The notes under the pieces: model-generated
Databases searched by the model: none
Seen by the model: the letters and a program-made list of their open reading frames with translations, nothing else
Told to the model about the DNA's origin: nothing
IMG/VR virus record: IMGVR_UViG_3300022868_000009
Coordinates: 124,001 to 188,000 of that record
Length of the DNA stretch: 64,000 nucleotides
Strand: one strand, 5' to 3'
In this document: positions 3,581 through 14,789 of the stretch, piece by piece
Layout: every line of letters starts with the position of its first letter
Numbering within the stretch: the first letter of the stretch is position 1
Position numbers and translations under genes: made by a program

Positions 3581-4636
3581 TTAAAATCCCCAATCATCAA
3601 AGTTTTCAAACTCATCTTTATTTTTTTGAATTGTCTGTTGTATTGAACCACTAAATAAACTATTTAATACCGATAATCTTTTATTAATATCTGGTAAACC
3701 TACTGGTTCTAAAAACCTATTAGCAATTGCCAAAAATGTTTTTTCAAATTGAGTATCATAATCTATCAATACTCTTTCTTTTTCAGTTATTTCATACGGA
3801 TGAAAACTTCTCATATAAGCAAACCTCTCTCCAAGAGTATGGTTACAAAAATACCATTTAACTCGACCACCTTTTAACAAATCATATTTAGTTTTAAACT
3901 CGCTATTTTTATTTAAAAGAAAATTATGTAAAGCGGCGGCTTTAACTGAAAAATGAGCACCTTTAACACAATTAACACCAATTTGATCATCAACTACTTT
4001 ATCTCTATAATTTGATAAAGAAGTCGTCATACTAATATCTTCAATATCAGAGGCTTTAAATTGATTTTTAAGATCTTTCATAATTTTTAAAACCTCACGT
4101 ATATTTAACGTATCAGGATTTTTAAATAAATAATTAATAAATTCCCAAACACCACCTTTCTGCTTTTGACCTCTAACAAATATTGGTGTTGAAGACCTTA
4201 CAATATCTACACCTTTTGGAAAAAAATGTTCCATATCTTCATAAAAAATACCATCTTCCCAAACCACATTATTAATATAATGTTTCTTTTCAAGATGCAT
4301 GGCAGATTTATTAACAGTTTCTAATTCAAAATCATGAATATTTTTAACACCATACTTTTTAGCATATTGGTCTAAATATTTAACAAATGTGTCTTTTACA
4401 TACAATCTATCAAGGGTTAATATAAATTCAAGAGGATCACCTTCATAATCACAAGAGTCCATTATTGGTTGAAACGACAAATATAAACTATTATGAACTA
4501 ATAAATTATTAGCAATAAAGGTGTGAGTTTCATCATCAACTTCTATATCATAAACATATTCTTCTTCTCCAAAATTACCTACACATTCAATTTCTGAAAT
4601 TTCAACCAATTCATAATTATAACATATATTTTCCAT
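3581..4636 (-). CDS. Family B DNA polymerase C-terminal fragment fused to C-intein (49 aa, 4490..4636)
   Basis: YVYDIEV...FIANNLLVHN/SLY intein C-terminus, then KKHY and KGVDIVRSSTP PolB motifs. Confidence 0.9.
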   Translation of the reverse strand: MENICYNYELVEISEIECVGNFGEEEYVYDIEVDDETHTFIANNLLVHNSLYLSFQPIMDSCDYEGDPLEFILTLDRLYVKDTFVKYLDQYAKKYGVKNIHDFELETVNKSAMHLEKKHYINNVVWEDGIFYEDMEHFFPKGVDIVRSSTPIFVRGQKQKGGVWEFINYLFKNPDTLNIREVLKIMKDLKNQFKASDIEDISMTTSLSNYRDKVVDDQIGVNCVKGAHFSVKAAALHNFLLNKNSEFKTKYDLLKGGRVKWYFCNHTLGERFAYMRSFHPYEITEKERVLIDYDTQFEKTFLAIANRFLEPVGLPDINKRLSVLNSLFSGSIQQTIQKNKDEFENFDDWGF

Positions 4637-5789
4637 ATATTTCTTTTATTAATTTTTTAATACTCGGCAAATCACTTTCCCAAATAACAATGATATCTAT
4701 ATCATGATCCTTTTTTAGAAGTGATAATTTTTCTTCATCTTTTTTCCATATATCAGATGATAATTCATTACTAAACGGATTAGGTTTATCATCATGTTTA
4801 AATTTTTTAGGATTAGCATGAAAAACATCACCATTATATTCTATACCTAAATTTAATTCTTTTATATAATAATCTATAAAAACATATCGACCAGTAGATA
4901 ACATCTTACCATATTCTTTATTATTACATTTTTCATAAAAATATGTTTTAAAATCTTTTGATATTTCTTTATCTAATTTCCACAAATAATCCTGTGAAGA
5001 TTTTGATGCTGGATAATTCCTTATCTTAGAATAAAATTGTTGTAATTTAATTAAAGCGTCATTTTTACCGTATATTCTTATATAATTAGATAAATTGTGT
5101 GCTTTTTGTTTACACAATTCATCCCATTTTAATTTACCATGTTTTAACACATAATATTCTTTACTTTTTGTTTCAATTTGTTTTTTAACATAATTTTCAT
5201 ATTTTATTTTACCGAATTTTTTGCCATGTTTTTTTATCAAATTTTCTAATGTAACAGATCTTGATTTATTATAATTATCAAAATCATCTTTATTCCAACC
5301 ATGTTTTTCTTTTTTATATTCAAATAAATTTGATTTTCGTTGTTTATCACAATAGATTTCCCATCTTTCAACTCCTTCATTTACACCATATTTTAAAATA
5401 TAATTTTCCTTTGTTCTAACGTAGTTTAAATTCTTCCATATTTCAGATTCTTTTTCTGGTATATTAAATGCATATGTTGTTATCTTATTTACCATGTTAA
5501 ATATTCTAGCCCTATTCTTATTTTTATACTCAGGATATTTTTCTATCAAACAATCTTCACAAACACTTAAATTATAAATTTTACCATTCACCGATTTAAA
5601 TGTTTTATAAGATTTGCCTTTGTATCCAAATTTTCTTACAGTAAATACAGAATTATAATAAAATATTGGACCATTACAAATTAAACACTTAACAGAATTT
5701 TTATCATAAAAATCTTGAATTTCCTCATAATCATCTTTATTGATATTAAATTTAAATTTTTGTAATTTATTTTTCATATGGTGACACAT
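4617..5789 (-). CDS. Free-standing endonuclease (Vsr/PD-(D/E)XK-like C-terminal domain) between split-intein halves
   Basis: CxxC, KYG/KHG repeats, FIDYY..IEYNGDVFHANP..IVIWES. Confidence 0.8.
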   Translation of the reverse strand: MCHHMKNKLQKFKFNINKDDYEEIQDFYDKNSVKCLICNGPIFYYNSVFTVRKFGYKGKSYKTFKSVNGKIYNLSVCEDCLIEKYPEYKNKNRARIFNMVNKITTYAFNIPEKESEIWKNLNYVRTKENYILKYGVNEGVERWEIYCDKQRKSNLFEYKKEKHGWNKDDFDNYNKSRSVTLENLIKKHGKKFGKIKYENYVKKQIETKSKEYYVLKHGKLKWDELCKQKAHNLSNYIRIYGKNDALIKLQQFYSKIRNYPASKSSQDYLWKLDKEISKDFKTYFYEKCNNKEYGKMLSTGRYVFIDYYIKELNLGIEYNGDVFHANPKKFKHDDKPNPFSNELSSDIWKKDEEKLSLLKKDHDIDIIVIWESDLPSIKKLIKEIYGKYML

Positions 5790-6780
5790 CTTTATCTCTA
5801 TATATCCTTAAAATTTTATCAGTTATTTTCATTTCAGAAGGTTTTACTTCAAATTGTTCACCGTCTCTAAAAACTATCATAGAATGATCATTTGTTACGA
5901 AAATTTCCTCACCTGTTTTTATTTTAATTTTCCATTTTTGTTTAATAACCTTATGTCTTATAACTCTTTTTACTGGTGCATAATATAGCTTTTTTTCAGA
6001 ACACCAATTTAAGATTTTTTCACCAGTTTTAACACTCTCATGTCCCTTCAACGTACTCTCACCCACATTTAATGTATTTTCGTTGTAAAATTCTTCTATT
6101 GTCTTTTCACCATTATTTGTGATAATTACACTATCCTTGTCAACCGAATCCGTATCACCATAAACACACAATTCATCTTTATGAAATTTCGTACTATAAG
6201 TTTCTTTATCATCTTTTGTCATTTCTGTAAAACCTGGCATTTCTTCTCTTTCAGAAATCACAGAACCATCAATTTGTTCAACATTATCTACAAAATTATG
6301 AAGATGTCTCTTATATTTAATATTATAAATTTTATCTTCAATTTTAATAGAATCTTTGTGTTCTTCTAATTTATCAATATCAACATTCCATTCTATTAGT
6401 AAATCATGTAAAGTATTATTACCCCTTCCAATTATTCTATTTCTATTATTCATCATATACCAAACATCACTATCATCAGTTACAATATACGTAAATTCTA
6501 ATAACTTATGAACTTCAATATCATGATACCATTCTTCATAAAAATATTTTTCTATTTTATTTAACATAAATAAAATTACATCTCTACCATGTGCTGTAAT
6601 AGCATTTGCAATATCTTTATTAGATACTACAAATTTAGGGTGAGCAAAAGCACCATAAGTTCCGTTAATCACTAATTTTAGTGCCAATTGCATTGCTTTA
6701 TTGTAGTTATATTCTGATTCTACTTTTGCGATTTTCTTTTTAAGATTCTCGATTTTTTTCTTTTTCTCGGCGAACGTCAT
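5767..6780 (-). CDS. Family B DNA polymerase middle fragment (motif B to YGDTD) fused to N-intein (126 aa, 5770..6147)
   Basis: KLVINGTYGAF (motif B), YGDTD/SVDKDS intein start, VTNDH block B. Confidence 0.9.
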   Translation of the reverse strand: MTFAEKKKKIENLKKKIAKVESEYNYNKAMQLALKLVINGTYGAFAHPKFVVSNKDIANAITAHGRDVILFMLNKIEKYFYEEWYHDIEVHKLLEFTYIVTDDSDVWYMMNNRNRIIGRGNNTLHDLLIEWNVDIDKLEEHKDSIKIEDKIYNIKYKRHLHNFVDNVEQIDGSVISEREEMPGFTEMTKDDKETYSTKFHKDELCVYGDTDSVDKDSVIITNNGEKTIEEFYNENTLNVGESTLKGHESVKTGEKILNWCSEKKLYYAPVKRVIRHKVIKQKWKIKIKTGEEIFVTNDHSMIVFRDGEQFEVKPSEMKITDKILRIYRDKDVSPYEK

Positions 6781-6816: not shown

Positions 6817-8418
6817 TTAAAAGTTTAATGAATATTTTATATTACCACTGTTATATATTCTATAAATACCTCTTTCTAACATTATTTCGTGTTCACTTTT
6901 ATTAGGATCATAACCTTCTCTAACTAAAACATCTTTTCTAAAATTATACCTATATAATCGTTTTAAATTTTTACCATCAAAATAATGATAATTCGGTTTT
7001 GTGTTATGAACGAATTTAAATTCCAATTTTTCATATAGATTTCCTTTACTCCAGCTTCTATCAGCATAAGTAATTATTTCACCCGGATTATAATTTCTGA
7101 TAAAATATTTAAATAATTTTGATGCACCACCAACAACATTAATATTTAATTTGTTACAAAACCTTAACAATTCATACTCTCCTTCTATACTTTTAGACCC
7201 CATTAATTTTCTTTTTTTACCAAAGGTCATTAGAGATACTAATTCATCTTCATAATAAAGACCTATTTTAACAAAAGAACCAACAAAACCTTGAAGATGA
7301 TTATCATTTAAAAAATTTCTAATCAATTTATTATCTATTATCTCTTTAATTATAGTTTTTCTAGCATATATTTTATCAGACTTTCCAATCATATTTAATA
7401 TTCTAGACTTGACAATTTCTTTTTGGTTAAACCATTCATCTTCCCAAATATGTATTAATTGAACACCTTTTTTTAAACAATTGTTTGTTTTATTTAAATG
7501 ATAATCCTTATCCTTATAAAGTTCTGAATGCCAATACAAACCATTAAATTCAAAAGCTAGATTTAAATCTGGTAAATAAATATCTAATTCTTTTCCATCC
7601 AAGATCTCTTTATCACTTGTTATTATTTCATAATTATAGTTTTCTTTAATAAAATTCACGATTTCTAATTCTTTACCTGAAATCTTATAATCTAATGTAT
7701 TACAAACTGTGCATAATATTGTTTTTTGTATTTTATATCTTTGATATAAATTTTTGCTATTAATATTAAAATAATGATCTTTACCACAATCACATTTAAC
7801 ATCTATCGTTCGATCAGTATTTAAAATATAATCTGTTATATTATATTCCGATAATTTAAATAATATATCTTTTTCCCACCTTTTATATGTTAACAAATAA
7901 TATGATTCTGTTTGTGTATACCATTCTTTTCCATATTTTTCAAGATTAGTTTTCTTTATTTTCTCTCTAATTTCATATGAAGAAAGTATCTCTTCCACGC
8001 CATATTTTTCAAGATTTGTTTTTTTAATTTTTTCTTTGACATCTTTATCTAATAATGTACAAGTAACGCCATATTTCTTGAGGTTTGTTTGTTTTGTTTT
8101 ATCTTTTATTTCTTTTATGTGTTGTGGATTTTCAACGCCATATTTTTCTAACATTGTATTTTTTCTTTTAATAGAAGAACATTTTTTACAACTATAAAAA
8201 CCTTGTCTTTTTTTATTTTCTAAATATTTATGATATCTTAGTTGTTTTTCATCTGAACATATCTCACAAACAGCAATTACTTTAACATGTGAATTTTGTG
8301 GCAAATCATTAACATCAATGTCCAATGTTTCACCATTATTACAAACATAATTTTTAGATCTATAATATGTTACATTACGATATGTTATATTAACATCAAT
8401 TCTACTATTTTTAATCAT
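6817..8418 (-). CDS. Putative homing endonuclease (KYG repeats plus Vsr-like domain)
   Basis: TNLEKYG repeats, ELDIYLPDLNLAFEFNGLYWHSE, IHIWEDEW; paralog of 57954..59675. Confidence 0.75.
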   Translation of the reverse strand: MIKNSRIDVNITYRNVTYYRSKNYVCNNGETLDIDVNDLPQNSHVKVIAVCEICSDEKQLRYHKYLENKKRQGFYSCKKCSSIKRKNTMLEKYGVENPQHIKEIKDKTKQTNLKKYGVTCTLLDKDVKEKIKKTNLEKYGVEEILSSYEIREKIKKTNLEKYGKEWYTQTESYYLLTYKRWEKDILFKLSEYNITDYILNTDRTIDVKCDCGKDHYFNINSKNLYQRYKIQKTILCTVCNTLDYKISGKELEIVNFIKENYNYEIITSDKEILDGKELDIYLPDLNLAFEFNGLYWHSELYKDKDYHLNKTNNCLKKGVQLIHIWEDEWFNQKEIVKSRILNMIGKSDKIYARKTIIKEIIDNKLIRNFLNDNHLQGFVGSFVKIGLYYEDELVSLMTFGKKRKLMGSKSIEGEYELLRFCNKLNINVVGGASKLFKYFIRNYNPGEIITYADRSWSKGNLYEKLEFKFVHNTKPNYHYFDGKNLKRLYRYNFRKDVLVREGYDPNKSEHEIMLERGIYRIYNSGNIKYSLNF

Positions 8419-8522
8419 TTTACAAAAGTCCCATTTTTACCATTGCTTATTATATATTAAAAAACACAAGTGAAAAATAAATTTATATATATAATAATGA
8501 ATAAAAATCATTTAGTTTAAAA

Positions 8523-9356
8523 ATGCCTTATAGAGACGAATTATCAGTTAAAAGAGAAATAGTTATGTCAATCAATAATATGATTGATAAATATGTTAAT
8601 CAAGGGATTAGTTTCACTGATCTTAGCAAACATTTAAGGAAAGATTCTGCTCTAACAAATTTAATGAATGATTTAAAAGGTAAAAACTCAAATTTAAGAA
8701 ATCCTGGTATTGAATTCTTTAATTCTAATCTAGAATACAAAAATAAAGTTAGACAGTATCTGAACGAAGTTATTAAAGATAGAATAGCTTTTGAAAAAGA
8801 TAAAAGCATTCAAAATTTTGAGTCTTTCACTAAAAATGAACCAAATGATATTATGAAACCTAAAAATTTTAAAGATTATTTACATATAAATGAAATTAAA
8901 CTTCCTGTAATGAGATTAGATGAAATACTTGATGATATTGGTAACGCAGGAAATACACATAAAAAAGTTATAGCAACATTTTTCAAAACCTACGTTGACT
9001 ATATAGATCTTGTTGATAACAAGAAACATCATTTTAAAATCAATGATATGTCAGGTGATATAATGGGTAATAATAGAGTGACATTTGATGCTATTATTTT
9101 TAAAAATAATGAAATACAATCAATAGAAAATAATATTATAAAATACGCTTTAGGTGAATTCTACTCACAAATTCCAGACACATTAAATATATTTGATATT
9201 CAATTAAAACCTATGTCTTTTATTAATAAAACTGATTTGATGGAAGTATTTAAAAATATGTTAACATTCGAACAAACTATTAATATTATTACTAATATTA
9301 CTGGTTTTAATTATGATGGTGAAATGGGTGATTTTTTTATTTGGAGTAAAAAATAA
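8523..9356 (+). CDS. Hypothetical protein
   Basis: Long ORF with internal KNFKDYLHINE motif. Confidence 0.6.
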   Translation: MPYRDELSVKREIVMSINNMIDKYVNQGISFTDLSKHLRKDSALTNLMNDLKGKNSNLRNPGIEFFNSNLEYKNKVRQYLNEVIKDRIAFEKDKSIQNFESFTKNEPNDIMKPKNFKDYLHINEIKLPVMRLDEILDDIGNAGNTHKKVIATFFKTYVDYIDLVDNKKHHFKINDMSGDIMGNNRVTFDAIIFKNNEIQSIENNIIKYALGEFYSQIPDTLNIFDIQLKPMSFINKTDLMEVFKNMLTFEQTINIITNITGFNYDGEMGDFFIWSKK

Positions 9357-9357
9357 A

Positions 9358-9696
9358 TTATAAAACAAACTCTTTCCAAATCTCTTCTCTTGGTGGTAAC
9401 ACAATTTTATCAATATGTGCAATTATATCTGGAAAATATTTATATTTATAAATATCAGTAATTTTATATTTTTCTAAAAAATCATCTTGAATAACAAATC
9501 TATAATCACCTTTTTTATTAAACCAATATATAATTTCATATAATTCGTTTCGTAAATTCAAAGATAATATAACTCCGACGCCATTTTCCATTGGGCCTAT
9601 CCAATCTGTAACACTAAAAGAAATATTATTCATTATAGAATATCTTTTTTTAATATATATAGTTACATTATAAATCAAAATGAAGAAAAATGGCAT
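9358..9696 (-). CDS. Hypothetical protein (probable start near 9633)
   Basis: ORF; the upstream extension overlaps a promoter motif. Confidence 0.55.
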   Translation of the reverse strand: MPFFFILIYNVTIYIKKRYSIMNNISFSVTDWIGPMENGVGVILSLNLRNELYEIIYWFNKKGDYRFVIQDDFLEKYKITDIYKYKYFPDIIAHIDKIVLPPREEIWKEFVL

Positions 9697-10067
9697 ATAA
9701 ACCTGTACAAGATTTTAAAGATATCTATATTAGATATAAAGGACACCCAAGTTATAATTCAAAAAAAATTATACAAGATGACTTAGTTGAAGTTATAGTC
9801 CAAAAATTAGAAATGATTTTATTCACAAACAAAGGTGAAGTTATGGGAGATCCAGACATGGGTTGTGATCTTGAATATTATTTATGGGAAACAAATCTAT
9901 CAAACACAAATTTAGAACAAAAAGTTAATGAACAAATTGCAGAATATGTACCAGAATTAGAAGTTATAGGATATGAATTTAATTTAGAATTAGAAGAAGG
10001 TGCAGTGCAAGATATATTGTATCTAAATTTTAAAATAAGAGGTTATAATGTAACATATATAATATAA
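9690..10067 (+). CDS. Baseplate wedge gp25-like protein
   Basis: LFTNKGEVMGDPDMGCDLEYYLWE...EQIAEYVP, matching the gp25/GPW pattern. Confidence 0.75.
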   Translation: MAYKPVQDFKDIYIRYKGHPSYNSKKIIQDDLVEVIVQKLEMILFTNKGEVMGDPDMGCDLEYYLWETNLSNTNLEQKVNEQIAEYVPELEVIGYEFNLELEEGAVQDILYLNFKIRGYNVTYII

Positions 10068-10076
10068 TAAAATTTT

Positions 10077-10601
10077 ATGGCTGGAAAAAAAACTACACTA
10101 GGTGATCGAGTATTCACTACTGAAAGAGTTAAAGAAATTGAAGAAAAAGAAAATTTAGGACAACTTTTAAAACAACACGAAAAAATATGGTTTAAGAATA
10201 ATCCAGGAGTTAGAAAATCAAATGTAACATTTGCTATGACTAATGAAGAAATTAGTGAATATGCAAAATGTAAACTCTCTGTACATTACTTCGCAGAAAA
10301 ATATTGTAAAATTAAATTAGAAGACAGTACAATAGGTTCAATGAAACTTAGAGACTATCAAAAAAAGATAATTGATTTATACACTAGAAACAGATTCTCT
10401 ATTTTAATGGCCAGTAGACAAACTGGTAAGTGCAATTCTTTTAATACTAAAATATTAATTTTAAATGAAGAAACAAAAGATATATATTCTATCCCTTTTT
10501 ACGAACTTTATTATGATATTATTAGTCAACAAAGAAAATTGTCATTCTTAGAGAAAACAAAAATATATTTATATAGATTATATAATAAAATTGATAATTA
10601 A
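10077..10601 (+). CDS. Terminase large subunit N-terminal fragment plus short N-intein (56 aa from Cys at 10431)
   Basis: YFAEKYCKI, LRDYQ, ASRQTGK/CNSFNTKI; Walker A interrupted. Confidence 0.9.
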   Translation: MAGKKTTLGDRVFTTERVKEIEEKENLGQLLKQHEKIWFKNNPGVRKSNVTFAMTNEEISEYAKCKLSVHYFAEKYCKIKLEDSTIGSMKLRDYQKKIIDLYTRNRFSILMASRQTGKCNSFNTKILILNEETKDIYSIPFYELYYDIISQQRKLSFLEKTKIYLYRLYNKIDN

Positions 10602-10668
10602 TCACATTACCGATTTGTCTAAAAGCCATTAAAATTTATCTATATATAAATGAAAACAATATATAACA

Positions 10669-11655
10669 ATGAAAAAAGAAATATCTGATTATATTATATG
10701 TAAAGTATGTGGTGAAAAAGTAAGAAGAATTTATGGTGCACATTTAAAGAAACATGGATTAACAAGCAAAGAATATAAAGAAATGTTTCCAGATGAACCA
10801 TTAACAACAAAAAATGATAATTTAAAAACAAGTAAAAATTCAGGATTGCATATGAAACAAGAAAAATATAAGAAAATGTTTTCTGAAAAAATAAAAGGAG
10901 AAAAAAATCCAAATCATAAAACAAAAACTACTGAAAAAGACAGGAAATCAAGAAGTCCATTTTCAAAAGATTTTAAAAAATATAAAAATGAACAAGAATT
11001 AATAGAATTTAGAGAAGAAGCATTAAAAGATAGAAAACACACAACTAGATTAGATTATTATTTAAAACAAGGGCTTGATATGGAAACATCCAAAAAAATG
11101 TTGAAAAAAAGACAAACAACATTTACTTTAGATATTTGTGTAGAAAAATATGGCAAAGAAAAAGGTATAGTAATTTGGAAAAATAGACAAGTAAAATGGC
11201 AAGAAAATTTATTATCTAATGGTAATTTAAAATGTGGATATTCTAAAATAAGTCAAGAACTGTTCTATGGTATATTAGAATATTATGATTATGAAAATAA
11301 AAAAGATATTTATTTTGCTACAAAAAATCAAGAATTTTTCATATCCAAAAAAGGAACAGACACAGATCCACGAATTTTTTTACAATACGATTTTTGTGAC
11401 ATGAAATCAAAAAAGATAATAGAATATAACGGTGATAGATATCATGCAAATCCGAAGATATATGAATCAAAAGACAATCCACATCCATTTAGAAAAAATA
11501 TAACATCACAAGAAATTTGGAATAAAGATAAAGAGAAAACAAGGATAGCGCAACAGGAAGGTTTTGATGTTTTAACTATATGGGATAGTGATTATAAAAA
11601 AGAAAAAGAAAAAATTATTCAGAAATGTCTGAATTTTTTAAATTTAAAAATATGA
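10669..11655 (+). CDS. Free-standing endonuclease between split-intein halves
   Basis: CKVC..HLKKHG zinc finger; YDFCD..IIEYNGDRYHANP..LTIWDS; paralog of 4617..5789. Confidence 0.8.
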   Translation: MKKEISDYIICKVCGEKVRRIYGAHLKKHGLTSKEYKEMFPDEPLTTKNDNLKTSKNSGLHMKQEKYKKMFSEKIKGEKNPNHKTKTTEKDRKSRSPFSKDFKKYKNEQELIEFREEALKDRKHTTRLDYYLKQGLDMETSKKMLKKRQTTFTLDICVEKYGKEKGIVIWKNRQVKWQENLLSNGNLKCGYSKISQELFYGILEYYDYENKKDIYFATKNQEFFISKKGTDTDPRIFLQYDFCDMKSKKIIEYNGDRYHANPKIYESKDNPHPFRKNITSQEIWNKDKEKTRIAQQEGFDVLTIWDSDYKKEKEKIIQKCLNFLNLKI

Positions 11656-13952
11656 AAGTAACAATTAAACATATTATTATATTTCTCATTCAATTAATTG
11701 AATATTATGAATTTAGAAATATTGATAAAGATGAAAATAAACCAAATAAAAAGATAGTAGATATTATACCAATAAATAAATATGTAAAAACTGACTATGG
11801 TAATACACCTGTTTCTGAAATAGTTAGAACAATACCATTACAGAGATATGAATTATTATTAGAAAATGATGATAAAATTGAATGCGCAGACACACATATA
11901 ATATATTGTAAAAATCATACTCCAAAATTAGTTTTAGATTTAACCGAAAATGATGAAGTTATTACAATATCTGGACTATCAAAAATCAAACATTTTAAAA
12001 AACTAAGAGGAAAATTATCAATGTTTGATTTAACTATTGATGGACCAGAACCAAGTTATTACACAAATAATATATTATCACATAATACAGTATCAGCTGC
12101 AATTGTTATTCTTCATTTTGTATTATTTAATAATGATAAAGGTTGTATGGTTGTTGCAAATAAAGGAACTACAGTTATAGAAATTATTGATAAAATAAAA
12201 TCTATTTATAAACATTTACCATTCTTCTTAAAAAGAGGTGTAATTAACTGGAATCAAAAATCTATAACATTTGATAATGGTTGTAGAATAAAATCAGAAA
12301 ATAGAACTAAAGAACCTGCTATTGGTTTTACAATCGACCTTTTGTATTTTGATGAGTTTGCAAAAGTACCATCTAACATAATTAGACCCTATTATGGATC
12401 CGCTGTTCCAACAGTATCATCAATCAAAAATTCAAAAATTATAATAACATCTACCCCAGATGGTTATAATTTATTCTACGAATTATTAACTGGTGCAGAA
12501 AAAGCCGAAGGAGATAAAGATAAGAACACATATGAATCCATGAGAGTATATTGGTGGCAAGTTAAAGGTAGAAGAGATACTAAACTTTATTTTAATAAAA
12601 AAATGTTATCTAAATATGGTGTTAAGGAAAGAGAAATTCTTCAAGAACTAGAATTATATGGATACACAATAACAAAAAGAAAAGAGGGTGAAAAATTAGT
12701 TCATATCATAGCATTTGATGAAGATAACGAAAAAACACACTTAGAAAAAATAAGATCAATAAGATTATTTGATAAATTACCTTTGGTTGAAATATGTAAT
12801 GTTACTAATTGGCAAGAAGAAGAAACTAAATTAGTTGGTGGTGAATCAATCTTCAAACAAGAATATGATATTCAATTTATAACAGGTGATAAGTTATTAT
12901 TTGATAGTATAACATTAGAAAGAATACAGAATGCTACAGAAAAATTTGAACATATTCCAATTCCTAATTTTGATAAAAGATTAGCCTTACCTTATGATAA
13001 ATTAGAATTTATTAAAGATAGACCAGATTTATTTGAGATAGAAGAAGTTAAAAAATATCATATGATGTTTTCTATTGATTTAGCTGAAGGTTTAGGTAGT
13101 GATTACACAGTTTTAAATATATTTAGATTATTACCAAAAGACAAAGTTATAATAGAAAAGAACAAACAGAAATTTACAAACATTTATGACTATTTCAAAC
13201 TAGAACAAGTTGGATTTTTTCATTGTAATTACTATTCAGTTAAAGAATTTGCACATTTATTGTATATGATTGCATATGAAATGTTTGATCCTGAAAAATG
13301 TAAAATATCTTTAGAATATAATACTTATGGTGGAGAATTATTAGCACATTTACCAAATGTATTTGAAGGTGATAATGATTATTTTGATGCCACATTTATT
13401 AGAACAAAACACAACCAAAATGATAAATATAGAAAAAAAGGTTTAAAAATAACAAAAGGCAATAAAGTTAAACTTGTTATAAAAGATTATCAAGATGCTA
13501 TTAAAAAACATAGTATAATAGTACATAATGCATTAAATATACTTGAAATGAAAGTTTTTAGTAAAAGAGAAACACCTTCTGGTGATTTTACATACCAATC
13601 AGAAACAGGAAATGATGATACCGTAATGTCATTAGTTAATTTAAGTGCTAGTTTAACATCAGTCCAATTCAAAGATATTGTTGATGATTATATTGCAACA
13701 GTACTAAATGATGAAGATAGAAGAATGATTGAAACAAATGTATCAGAATTTAGTGATGAAACTGTAGATTATAGTTCAGCTATATCAAGTTACAAAAAAG
13801 TATATCTAGATAAATCTAAAAAACCTGGAGTTGGAAATAGTTTTAAATCAAGTCCGTTCGAACAACCAAATCCTTACCAAAAAAAAGGAAATCCATTTGA
13901 AAATAATCCATTTGGTAAAGGTACAACTGGTGTTAGTCCTTTCGGAAAATAA
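11625..13952 (+). CDS. Terminase large subunit C-terminal fragment fused to long C-intein (probable start 11652; intein ends 12086)
   Basis: CADTH block B, YYTNNILSHN/TVSAA; Walker B LLYFDEFA, ITSTPDG, nuclease DLAEGLGSD and NDD. Confidence 0.9.
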   Translation: MSEFFKFKNMKVTIKHIIIFLIQLIEYYEFRNIDKDENKPNKKIVDIIPINKYVKTDYGNTPVSEIVRTIPLQRYELLLENDDKIECADTHIIYCKNHTPKLVLDLTENDEVITISGLSKIKHFKKLRGKLSMFDLTIDGPEPSYYTNNILSHNTVSAAIVILHFVLFNNDKGCMVVANKGTTVIEIIDKIKSIYKHLPFFLKRGVINWNQKSITFDNGCRIKSENRTKEPAIGFTIDLLYFDEFAKVPSNIIRPYYGSAVPTVSSIKNSKIIITSTPDGYNLFYELLTGAEKAEGDKDKNTYESMRVYWWQVKGRRDTKLYFNKKMLSKYGVKEREILQELELYGYTITKRKEGEKLVHIIAFDEDNEKTHLEKIRSIRLFDKLPLVEICNVTNWQEEETKLVGGESIFKQEYDIQFITGDKLLFDSITLERIQNATEKFEHIPIPNFDKRLALPYDKLEFIKDRPDLFEIEEVKKYHMMFSIDLAEGLGSDYTVLNIFRLLPKDKVIIEKNKQKFTNIYDYFKLEQVGFFHCNYYSVKEFAHLLYMIAYEMFDPEKCKISLEYNTYGGELLAHLPNVFEGDNDYFDATFIRTKHNQNDKYRKKGLKITKGNKVKLVIKDYQDAIKKHSIIVHNALNILEMKVFSKRETPSGDFTYQSETGNDDTVMSLVNLSASLTSVQFKDIVDDYIATVLNDEDRRMIETNVSEFSDETVDYSSAISSYKKVYLDKSKKPGVGNSFKSSPFEQPNPYQKKGNPFENNPFGKGTTGVSPFGK

Positions 13953-14000
13953 ACTTTTCAATTTTTCGGAAATATATGTTTAAAATATAGAATTTTATAA

Positions 14001-14789
14001 ATGGCTAAAAGGATTGTAACAAAAAACAATGTTTTTAAAATGAATGTTAATGAACAATTACCACTCTTTTTAAAAATGATTCAAGATTTAACTCAAATAG
14101 ATGATAGAATCTTATTTAAATTTAATAATGATAAATTATTAATATATAGCATGGTTGGTCAAGATACTAATATACATGCATTTAAATCACATATTATAGA
14201 TATGTGTGAAATATTTTCACTTGTTAAAAATGAATTTGAAACAGATATTAAATATACTGTAAAAAATGCCAAGAAATTTTTCAAAAGTATCCAAGGGTTA
14301 ATAAATTACAAAGAAGATATTGATTTAAAATTAGTTTATAATGAAGATAATTTTGGAGAAAAATTAATGATTAAAAATAGTATTTATAAAAGAGAATTTG
14401 CTGGAGATGATCCAACAGTTTTCAAAAAAGATATTAATATTGAAGCCATTAATGATGCCATGGATACAGATTTATCATCATTTTCTTTTAAATTAACAAA
14501 AGATAAATATGACCATATTAAAAAGGAATCTGGAATTGATACAGAAAATGAAATTTATTTCTTAAATGTTCGTGACGGTGCCGTTTCATTAGGAGAAAAT
14601 TCATGGGAATTAAAGGTGGATGAAGGAGTAGAAACAATAGATAGTACAATAAGTTTTCCTAAAAAATACTTTAATAGTATTAATTTTGATAAAGATATAG
14701 ATGAATTAACTATATGGGTTTTTGATATGTTTATATTAGTAATAGGAGAAAACACAAATTTAATGATATCAATAGAATTAACAATTTAA
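14001..14789 (+). CDS. Probable sliding clamp (gp45/PCNA-like)
   Basis: 262 aa, acidic, alternating beta/alpha pattern, T4-like context; no diagnostic motif recognised. Confidence 0.45.
   Translation: MAKRIVTKNNVFKMNVNEQLPLFLKMIQDLTQIDDRILFKFNNDKLLIYSMVGQDTNIHAFKSHIIDMCEIFSLVKNEFETDIKYTVKNAKKFFKSIQGLINYKEDIDLKLVYNEDNFGEKLMIKNSIYKREFAGDDPTVFKKDINIEAINDAMDTDLSSFSFKLTKDKYDHIKKESGIDTENEIYFLNVRDGAVSLGENSWELKVDEGVETIDSTISFPKKYFNSINFDKDIDELTIWVFDMFILVIGENTNLMISIELTI

Follow-up and report, generated by a model that had tools for sequence, protein, structure and literature searches.

Organization of the terL locus

In the window, i.e. the whole 64,000-nucleotide stretch of DNA analysed here, the gene for the terminase large subunit (terL) consists of two open reading frames (ORFs), 10077-10601 and 11652-13952, with the break inside the Walker A motif (SRQTGK|T). 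The following features were assigned in and between the two ORFs:

10077-10601, plus strand: TerL-N ORF, 174 aa, made up of 118 extein and 56 intein residues
10077..10430, plus strand: TerL N-extein, 118 aa, the last six being the first Walker A residues SRQTGK
10431..10598, plus strand: N-intein, 56 aa, with Cys1 at 10431-10433; its stop codon is at 10599-10601
10539..10592, plus strand: predicted C-terminal amphipathic helix of the N-intein, about Leu37 to Ile54, placed by invariant residues and model contacts
10669..11655, plus strand: free-standing homing-endonuclease-like gene, 328 aa, with a ROS/MucR-type zinc finger and a Vsr-like (EDxHD-type) nuclease
11652..12086, plus strand: C-intein, 145 aa, start chosen by homology and the ATGA overlap
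11655..11717, plus strand: predicted N-terminal amphipathic helix of the C-intein, Lys2 to Arg22, placed by a conserved motif and model contacts
11880..11897, plus strand: block B (ECADTH) with the catalytic His82; H82 is invariant, A79 and D80 nearly so
12081..12089, plus strand: C-terminal splice junction with His144, Asn145 and Thr+1; H144 and N145 are invariant, T146 nearly so
12087..13952, plus strand: TerL C-extein, 621 aa plus stop, matching Pfam Terminase_6N (E 2.4e-10)

The N-extein matched the PHROG terminase large subunit (E 3.9e-20), and the C-extein shares 51% identity with the TerL of LR756501. With the intein parts taken out, the sequence reads SRQTGK-TVSAA, and the predicted mature TerL (739 aa) is colinear with the uninterrupted TerL proteins of L003, L004 and the related huge phage L001, the last of which reads SRQSGKTVSAA at this site. 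The interruption of Walker A, proposed in a first-pass annotation of this DNA, is thus borne out by both the ORFs and the colinearity with L001 TerL. As for the start of the second piece, an earlier in-frame ATG at 11625 (ORF 11625-13952) would lengthen the C-intein by 9 aa; the second ATG, at 11652, is favoured by homologues and overlaps the stop codon of the endonuclease gene as ATGA.

We considered the possibility that terL is broken (a pseudogene) or misassembled (a chimeric contig), given that the source record is a metagenome assembly and only ~48% complete. This explanation appears practically negligible: contigs from other, independent samples span both junctions with zero differences, the three ORFs are intact, and N-fragments of 166-186 aa with the same architecture were found in 433 protein clusters, which implies that the split is not a one-off. 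The TerL C-part at 12087..13952 is the only one present in the 344-kb record, and no second, intact terL was found in this record, although its incompleteness makes such a copy elsewhere in the genome conceivable.

With regard to other signals in this region, the listed read joints had sides of ~20-37 letters in AT-rich sequence and were treated as spurious. The scan for promoters and terminators was uninformative, and the DNA has a G+C content of 23-26%.

Intein halves and their catalytic residues

Cys1 lies directly after SRQTGK and is invariant in the aligned N-parts (60/60), while H82, D126 (the block F Asp), H144 and N145 are invariant among the 66 aligned C-parts. In block B, the usual Thr is replaced by Ala across this intein family. 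The C-intein ends in ILSHN and is followed by TVSAA; HN|T was seen at 67 of the 70 junctions found among C-fragment homologues. Unusual C-termini were observed in two relatives, LN|T in LR756501 and SQ|T in LR756500, implying that the splicing chemistry is not uniform within the family. Taken together, Cys1, the block B His, the block F Asp and His-Asn followed by Thr+1 place the intein described here in class 1.

A HINT fold was obtained in the AF2 model of a contiguous (cis) homologue, P0173 (pLDDT 87), and all of its top 50 Foldseek matches in PDB were inteins or Hint/BIL domains (E down to 4.5e-10). When cis inteins were aligned jointly with both N-parts and C-parts, the N-parts were misplaced; the alignment used for the fold was the one without them. 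At the sequence level, the C-intein is homologous to gp41-1 (E 4.7e-10), CatC (6dsl_B; E 1.2e-8, profile positions 34-147) and VidaL inteins. The Pfam Intein_splicing model did not detect this intein; since the model is blind to it, the missing domain is no argument against its identity as an intein.

The first-pass annotation had described a 56-aa N-intein with Cys1, a C-intein of about 145 aa that contains block B and, accordingly, an N-proximal split. All of these agree with the present assignment, in which the C-intein has exactly 145 residues from the 11652 start. On the other hand, Thr+1 had been put forward as a distinctive point, and this did not hold, because it is the Walker A threonine, common to homologues, including the cis homologues at this site. 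In our opinion, the split intein at the TerL locus is genuine and resides in a fractured gene. It represents a variant of an already known type, is predicted from its sequence to splice in trans and probably joins the two TerL pieces.

Terminal helices and the modelled complex

The terminal helices rank among the best-conserved parts of both intein halves. The N-intein helix holds the invariant residues L37, E41, K44, L47 and Y48 (60 N-parts). In the C-intein helix I13, E17 and E20 are nearly invariant (66 C-parts), and the motif LIQLIEKYEFRN is present in nearly all of the 82 C-fragment hits. In the contiguous homologues P0173, P0177, P0189 and P0198, both helices reside on one chain as a hairpin; in the P0173 model they span H41-51, the counterpart of the N-intein helix, and H58-75. 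The hairpin is ~52 aa long and the split falls in its loop, which explains why the N-intein is longer than those of the known atypical TerL inteins.

Modelling of the window's two halves as a complex, a check that had been suggested together with the idea that these amphipathic extensions may zip the halves together, gave a HINT fold completed across the chains. The ipSAE was 0.82, against 0.38 for the best of three controls, in which the N-part was kept and the C-part replaced; this score is the model's own confidence, and for the HINT part of the interface it may reflect solved structures known to the model, among which intein complexes are well represented. Of 80 solved complexes, 58 reached the pass mark for such scores, as did 2 of 110 mismatched pairs; these figures are only a rough guide here, where our own alignments were used. 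Contacts agreed by at least 73% among three runs, with a partner pLDDT of at least 78. The lowest-error contacts were from helix to helix in antiparallel orientation, including the E17-K44 pair, and C-intein residues 2-20 contacted the N-intein helix. Thus, the conservation and the model both speak for the proposed zipper, and helix pairing may well have a part in fragment association. A search for covariation between the helices, with N- and C-fragments matched up through contigs of identical length, revealed only clade-level differences, indistinguishable from shared ancestry.

The helices had also been regarded as distinctive. This is correct in that they are extra compared with homologous inteins without them (those of Ackermannviridae and CP220-like phages have a short loop, and CatC aligns only past the helix); they are, however, not peculiar to the split form, as shown by the cis hairpin. 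In the limited set of literature searched, we found neither a helical hairpin nor a zipper described for the split site of a natural intein.

One alternative is that the TerL pieces assemble non-covalently and that the intein halves, held by their helices, serve as a dimerisation module only. The helices alone could hold the TerL halves together, and non-covalent assembly has been reported for a phage NrdA whose gene is interrupted by that of a mobile endonuclease (PMC3045599). Without splicing, however, a domain of ~200 aa would stay in the P-loop between the Walker A Lys and Thr, and the family shows no variation, or next to none in the case of T146, at the positions needed for splicing only (Cys1, the block B His, His-Asn and Thr+1). 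We therefore consider this alternative improbable and favour covalent joining of the two pieces by the split intein.

Endonuclease gene and evolution of cis and split alleles

The first-pass annotation had also noted an endonuclease gene separating the halves; this is the Vsr-like gene at 10669-11655. Its product carries a ROS/MucR zinc finger at the N-terminus (E 6.5e-6), and NUMOD-type DNA-binding repeats were not found in it. The C-terminal part has a weak DUF559/MTES_1575 match in Pfam; among seven members, MTES_1575 matched five and DUF559 three. The catalytic Glu, Asp and His (E252, D256 and H259) are invariant in six homologues. The best PDB profile match was I-Bth0305I (3r3p), with a marginal E of 0.057. 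A model of moderate quality (pLDDT 72) resembled 1vsr (Foldseek prob 0.98) and 3r3p (prob 0.97, TMt 0.61), although with E-values of only 0.04-0.13. Two paralogues are present in the same genome, each adjoining another split intein.

Such a gene arrangement might also be produced by a group I or group II intron that carries an endonuclease ORF and is removed at the RNA level. In other huge phages terL is split by small group I introns (PMC12880540), and Vsr-like endonucleases occur in group I introns too (PMC2677866). Here, however, the sequence to be removed encodes a conserved intein with invariant catalytic residues. Searching 9500-14500 on both strands with Rfam covariance models yielded no match at E up to 1, so that no ribozyme core was recognized, and the 67-nt spacer between TerL-N and the endonuclease gene had no structure beyond that of shuffled sequences (z +0.69). 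Moreover, the distance between the intein halves differs among relatives: LR756500 resembles this window in having both halves beside the endonuclease gene, and the halves are separated by 2.5 kb in L019 and, without an endonuclease gene, by 12.4 kb in LR756501, with unrelated genes in between in such distant pairs. Joining of halves with so variable a spacing makes sense only at the protein level, and intron removal appears very improbable.

The N-intein is 53-57 aa long in 118 of 120 cases among the clusters listed. The transition between cis and split forms could be followed in a closely related pair of phages, L023 (cis) and L021 (split), whose intein flanks are identical; in L021 the hairpin loop is the exact site that has received a homologous endonuclease gene, which reads on the opposite strand. 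Endonuclease genes have entered this loop at least twice, in both orientations. These near-identical alleles document a homing endonuclease gene breaking an intein gene, a step that had been proposed by Dassa et al. from metagenome fragments (PMC2677866). From the clade tree only the cis/split labels and the clade structure were used, and the automatic helix labels gave false negatives (P0165, P0173 and P0177 carry the motif). It should also be mentioned that in this clade of huge phages the marker gene terL is as a rule divided in two, in some cases with over 10 kb between the parts, which can mislead gene calling and phylogeny.

These data also bear on another view of the hairpin, namely that its role is not association: it may be a tolerated insertion in which endonuclease genes can land, may be left over from an earlier element, or may serve the intein in regulation or interactions, and the halves would meet mainly via the HINT core, as in Cat and AceL-TerL. 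The repeated entry of endonuclease genes agrees with this view. The hairpin is also present in cis-splicing homologues, in which association is unneeded, and its original role need not have been association. In addition, a split in the same loop without the hairpin works in nature (vB_VmeM-32, SCTP-2, P0199-P0201 and the 31-aa N-intein of L008). Against it, the helices of the split forms hold a disproportionate share of the invariant residues, their pairing provides the lowest-error contacts in the complex model, and the hairpin clade (~75 sampled clusters), nearly all of whose members are split, keeps the helices throughout. On balance, we regard a role other than association as rather unlikely.

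Proposed mechanism and implications

Starting from the observed gene anatomy, homology, conservation and cis/split allele pair, we consider it probable that a single explanation accounts for the locus: a fractured terL with a helix-paired split intein, trans-splicing of class 1, and a homing endonuclease gene between the halves. Two polypeptides would be made, one comprising the N-extein (118 aa) and the N-intein (56 aa), and the other the C-intein (145 aa) and the C-extein (621 aa). The helix that closes the N-intein would pair in antiparallel fashion with the one that opens the C-intein, as the arms of the hairpin do in cis. Through this pairing, the short beta-beta-alpha segment at the beginning of the N-intein would dock into the C-intein, and the HINT fold would be completed. 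The predicted splicing activity would then follow the class 1 route, in which attack by Cys1, transfer to the hydroxyl of Thr+1 and cyclisation of Asn145 join Lys118 to Thr+1 and rebuild the Walker A motif SRQTGK-T. The Vsr-like endonuclease gene would represent a selfish homing element residing in the DNA that codes for the hairpin loop.

A wider reading is offered more tentatively, as possible rather than probable. The hairpin-bearing TerL inteins may form a distinct and very abundant class of natural split inteins, in which the zipper, and not the HINT fragments, makes the first capture; Vsr-like homing endonuclease genes may land repeatedly in the hairpin-loop DNA, and the intein could then alternate between the cis and the trans state while staying functional. 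Known natural TerL split inteins have, according to a review, low affinity and assemble through an unusual threading step (PMC11766414). A natural family with one additional conserved helix per half would hint at how the problem of association was overcome in evolution. If this is true, the two-helix module might be carried over to other split inteins, where it would act as a natural affinity clamp, and the family would supply hundreds of ready-made variants from cold and saline waters for testing. Protein ligation and labelling are applications for which split inteins with a short N-fragment are much in demand as tools.

Comparison with known systems

The locus resembles the fractured genes described by Dassa et al. 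(2009; PMC2677866) in having two intein-half ORFs, a free-standing Vsr-like endonuclease gene between them and a location in phage DNA; a gp17-type terminase locus was among the original 26-27 fractured-gene loci (PMC2677866). In contrast to them, the present intein is split N-proximally, so that block B belongs to the C-intein, and the split is positioned in the loop of a helical hairpin. The endonucleases also differ, with NUMOD motifs in those genes and a ROS/MucR-type zinc finger here. I-Bth0305I, the EDxHD prototype (PMC3239194, PDB 3r3p), shares with the present endonuclease the Vsr-like catalytic domain, albeit through the marginal match given above, and the association with fractured genes. 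However, I-Bth0305I is intron-encoded and has NUMOD repeats, whereas the present gene is free-standing inside an intein gene and its product has a zinc finger.

The mini-inteins found in the TerL P-loop of Ackermannviridae and of CP220-like Campylobacter phages are likewise inserted after the Walker A lysine or its equivalent, end in an HN|T or HN|S junction and are homologous over the C-terminal two thirds. They differ in being cis-splicing and in having a loop of ~15 aa in place of the ~52-aa hairpin.

Typical natural split inteins consist of about 100 plus 35-40 aa (PMC10189870), and the characterised atypical inteins have N-inteins of 15-37 aa, shorter than the 56 aa found here. AceL-TerL, GOS-TerL and their consensus, Cat (PDB 6dsl), are similar to the present intein in their TerL host, short N-intein and long C-intein with block B. 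Like AceL-TerL, which originates from a saline lake in Antarctica (PMC11766414), the intein of this window was found in the metagenome of a salt lake. GOS-TerL has Ser1 and Cys+1 (PMC11766414), whereas Cys1 and Thr+1 are found here. The N-inteins of AceL-TerL, GOS-TerL and Cat comprise 25, 37 and 30 aa, respectively, and the Cat C-intein 104 aa (PMC11766414); compared with these, the halves of 56 and 145 aa described here carry ~25 extra residues per side, which correspond to the helices.

Organization of the fractured terL gene

According to the ORF listing of the window, 10077-13952 is filled by three ORFs on one strand, and only short AT-rich ORFs are present on the opposite (minus) strand. 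The first ORF encodes the large terminase (TerL) up to SRQTGK, then Cys and 55 further residues, and then a stop; the middle one is an endonuclease gene. The third ORF matches Pfam Terminase_6N, and its first ~145 residues are non-terminase, contain ECADTH and end in ILSHN, followed by TVSAA. We placed the start of this C-fragment at the second ATG (11652) rather than at 11625, because homologues begin there and because this codon shares nucleotides with the middle ORF's stop codon (ATGA).

Features of the terL locus (window coordinates)
10077-10601, plus strand: TerL N-fragment ORF, 174 aa; PHROG match to T4-type large terminase N-terminus (E 3.9e-20)
10077-10430, plus strand: N-extein, 118 aa
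10431-10598, plus strand: N-intein, 56 aa
10669-11655, plus strand: endonuclease gene between the terminase halves, 328 aa
11652-12086, plus strand: C-intein, 145 aa
12087-12089, plus strand: Thr+1
12087-13949, plus strand: C-extein, 621 aa

These exact coordinates confirmed what the first-pass annotation had proposed, namely an N-proximal split with a 56-aa N-intein (10431-10598) starting with Cys1, and with block B (CADTH) inside a ~145-aa C-intein ending in SHN/T. Its reading of an interrupted Walker A motif (SRQTGK, then the insert, then T) was borne out by the ORFs and by the intein-less relative LR756504 (L001), in which SRQSGKTVSAA is found where the window has SRQTGK, the insert and TVSAA. 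TerL is uninterrupted in this and two other related huge phages (L003 and L004).

Identity of the intein

In our alignments, Cys1 was invariant across 60 N-parts; the His of block B, the Asp of block F and the terminal His-Asn showed no variation across 66 C-parts, with Thr+1 nearly invariant. The C-intein profile matched gp41-1 (E 4.7e-10), CatC (E 1.2e-8) and VidaL (E 1.2e-6) in PDB; Pfam's own intein model gave no match to the TerL intein of the window. Contiguous inteins at the equivalent TerL position were identified by tblastn in Ackermannviridae and CP220-like Campylobacter phages. Judged from sequence, the TerL insert is an intein at the P-loop, and the data support a split intein in a fractured terL gene whose halves are predicted to be active in splicing. 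The C-terminal junction varies in two huge phages: LR756501 has LN/T, in which the penultimate His is absent, and LR756500 has SQ/T, with terminal Gln in place of Asn.

Distribution and arrangement of the split halves

The virus record that holds the window comprises 344,634 bp, with an estimated completeness of 48%, and the stretch is present in salt-lake and marine metagenome runs. The closest TerL sequences belong to uncultured huge phages of 460-735 kb (LR7565xx), followed by Tenacibaculum jumbo phages. Both junctions (N-fragment/endonuclease and endonuclease/C-fragment) are covered by contigs of four samples with zero differences, and an assembly artefact as the cause of the fracture could therefore be ruled out.

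Clustering at 90% identity gave 433 clusters of N-fragments that measure 166-186 aa and include an N-intein of 53-57 aa, and C-fragments with a C-intein of ~145-148 aa formed ~70 clusters within the search used. The split of the TerL intein is old, common and stable. The order N-fragment, endonuclease gene, C-fragment is shared by the window and LR756500, and two more genes precede the C-fragment in the related locus L019. At two other loci (L017 and L015) the N-fragment is accompanied by the endonuclease gene or a remnant thereof, and the C-fragment is located elsewhere. The halves of the 735-kb phage LR756501 lie 12.4 kb apart, neither being adjoined by an endonuclease gene. For these variable and sometimes very widely spaced arrangements we do not find RNA-level joining of the two terL ORFs credible, and no ribozyme was detectable when looked for in the window.

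Several related loci showed additional features. Behind the closest relative of the window's N-fragment (L015/L016), the endonuclease gene is reduced to a 50-aa zinc-finger remnant; several very short called genes in a row and a phage-encoded release-factor-like gene (PCRF/RF-1) come within 3 kb. Directly downstream of the split terL in LR756500 (L006), positions 8163-8975 encode a TerL-like ATPase paralogue of 270 aa, in which Walker A is degenerate (SRQMGIS). In the cultured Delftia phage PhiW-14 (NC_013697; L011, 976-3255), the TerL intein is divided at the same loop, where two in-frame stops follow each other with no gene between the halves, and the N-fragment (976-1446) is unannotated in the record. 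The annotated terminase genes of Vibrio phage vB_VmeM-32 and Salicola phage SCTP-2 open with a helix-less C-intein, and each contains another intein or N-intein farther downstream, near Walker B; TerL of these isolates, too, would therefore consist of two or more pieces.

A helix pair at the split site

Compared with the contiguous Ackermannviridae intein, which has a ~15-residue loop at this place, the N-intein of the window is extended at its end by ~25 residues and the C-intein at its start by ~27; CatC can be aligned to the C-intein only from residue 34 on. Within the N-intein, the extra segment ranks among the best-conserved parts (L37, E41, K44, L47 and Y48 invariant, with heptad-like spacing), and in the C-intein motif LIQLIEKYEFRN I13, E17 and E20 are nearly invariant.

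The structure of the two intein parts was predicted as a complex, and the model passed its test: its ipSAE was 0.82, and the highest-scoring of three controls had 0.38. Among solved complexes, 58 of 80 attain the pass mark, compared with 2 of 110 mismatched pairs, counts that are rough here since our own alignments were used. Three runs shared at least 73% of contacts, with a partner pLDDT of at least 78. The contacts of lowest expected error joined C-intein residues 2-20 with N-intein residues 40-55 in antiparallel register, including an E17-K44 pair, and the others were those expected for completion of the HINT fold. The model thus supports pairing of the two helices across the split halves. 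For the earlier suggestion that these helices zip the halves together, the modelled antiparallel pairing and the conserved residues are favourable, although such a model supports the pairing rather than proves it.

Contiguous homologues and origin of the split

Four clusters of TerL homologues (P0173, P0177, P0189 and P0198) are contiguous and contain the same two helices linked by a loop of 4-6 residues. In the AlphaFold2 model of the P0173 intein (pLDDT 87), helices 41-51 and 58-75 precede a beta-rich core, and solved inteins match this core, only ~0.55 of the model by TM-score. The two helices of the window are the two arms of one hairpin, cut in two by the split.

Two syntenic phages with TerL proteins 85% identical illustrate both states. 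The intein is contiguous in L023; its counterpart in L021 shows no difference up to KLYN and again from FYIKC on, and carries in the loop, on the opposite strand, a gene homologous to the window's endonuclease gene (378 aa). DNA identity between them is 92-100% over the intein versus 63-89% in the exteins, as one would expect if homing or gene conversion around a homing element had occurred recently.

In a quick tree, read without the helix/no-helix labels, which were unreliable, hairpin-bearing inteins formed one clade (SH-aLRT 99), and all cis forms fell within one seven-member subclade. Since they are interleaved there with split forms, at least two independent fractures at the hairpin loop are implied. 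Parsimony favours a split ancestor of the hairpin clade with one re-fusion, and repeated insertion would be favoured by what is known of homing.

The endonuclease gene

Residues 6-47 of the 328-aa protein make up a ROS/MucR-type zinc finger (E 6.5e-6), and its C-terminal domain has weak DUF559 and MTES_1575 matches, which were detected in 3 and 5 of 7 homologues. E252, D256 and H259 are invariant among the homologues aligned. The best PDB profile match was the I-Bth0305I catalytic domain, with a marginal E-value of 0.057, and a structural model of moderate quality (pLDDT 72) matched E. coli Vsr (prob 0.98) and I-Bth0305I (prob 0.97). We accept it as a Vsr-like homing endonuclease of the EDxHD type with predicted activity; the claim of an endonuclease gene separating the halves holds. 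The prototype I-Bth0305I has NUMOD repeats, whereas the window's enzyme has a different DNA-binding module, the zinc finger. In LR756504, a small Vsr-like ORF (156 aa, 2225-2695) ends exactly at the start of the uninterrupted, intein-less terL; it could represent a free-standing homing endonuclease gene next to an unoccupied site.

Other fractured genes in the same genome

Two paralogues of the endonuclease were found in the same genome, each adjoining another split intein. One lies in a family B DNA polymerase gene that is also fractured (window 3581-6780, minus strand).

Features of the polymerase region (window coordinates)
5767-6780, minus strand: polymerase N-part, ending in a ~126-aa N-intein that starts at the Ser of YGDTD/S
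4617-5789, minus strand: paralogous endonuclease gene, 390 aa
3581-4636, minus strand: polymerase C-part, opening with a 49-aa C-intein that ends in VHN/S
6817-8418, minus strand: 533-aa ORF beside the split polymerase gene; DUF7487 match, weak MTES_1575 nuclease match

The polymerase intein would be naturally split where inteins typically are, carrying Ser1 and Ser+1 and lacking a catalytic cysteine, and the 533-aa ORF may be another free-standing homing endonuclease. The third fractured gene encodes a Rad50/gp46-like ATPase (L008 719-3719, G000:C1:84390-88109 of the window's own genome), whose sequence breaks off after the P-loop GKNGSGK and continues as an N-intein of 31 aa; next come a paralogous endonuclease gene (408 aa) and a ~120-aa C-intein ending in THN/S. 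This is a second atypically split intein, without long helices.

Comparison with known split inteins

Our analysis confirmed the observation made in the first-pass annotation and supported its interpretation. As it had stated, fractured phage genes with Vsr-like endonucleases and atypically split TerL inteins are already known (PMC2677866; PMC11766414); the former were reported in a 2009 study, with one terminase locus among them (PMC2677866). It had also regarded Thr+1 as distinctive. A review puts the share of inteins with Cys1/Thr+1 at 12% (PMC11766414), and we did not count this pair as distinctive because it is dictated by Walker A. The locus clearly exemplifies a gene fractured by a homing endonuclease, leaves the general picture unchanged, and is of real interest for intein biochemistry and protein engineering. 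The literature searched, in which AceL, GOS and Cat were covered through secondary sources, yielded no account of conserved paired helices where an intein is naturally split.

Typical split inteins have parts of ~100 and 35-40 aa (PMC10189870). The N-intein is 25 aa in AceL-TerL, whose source is a saline lake in Antarctica, and 37 aa in GOS-TerL, which has Ser1/Cys+1; Cat, the consensus of both, has parts of 30 and 104 aa (PMC11766414). AceL, GOS and Cat are homologous to the intein of the window and split at the same structural loop, to which the latter adds a ~52-aa hairpin cut in two.
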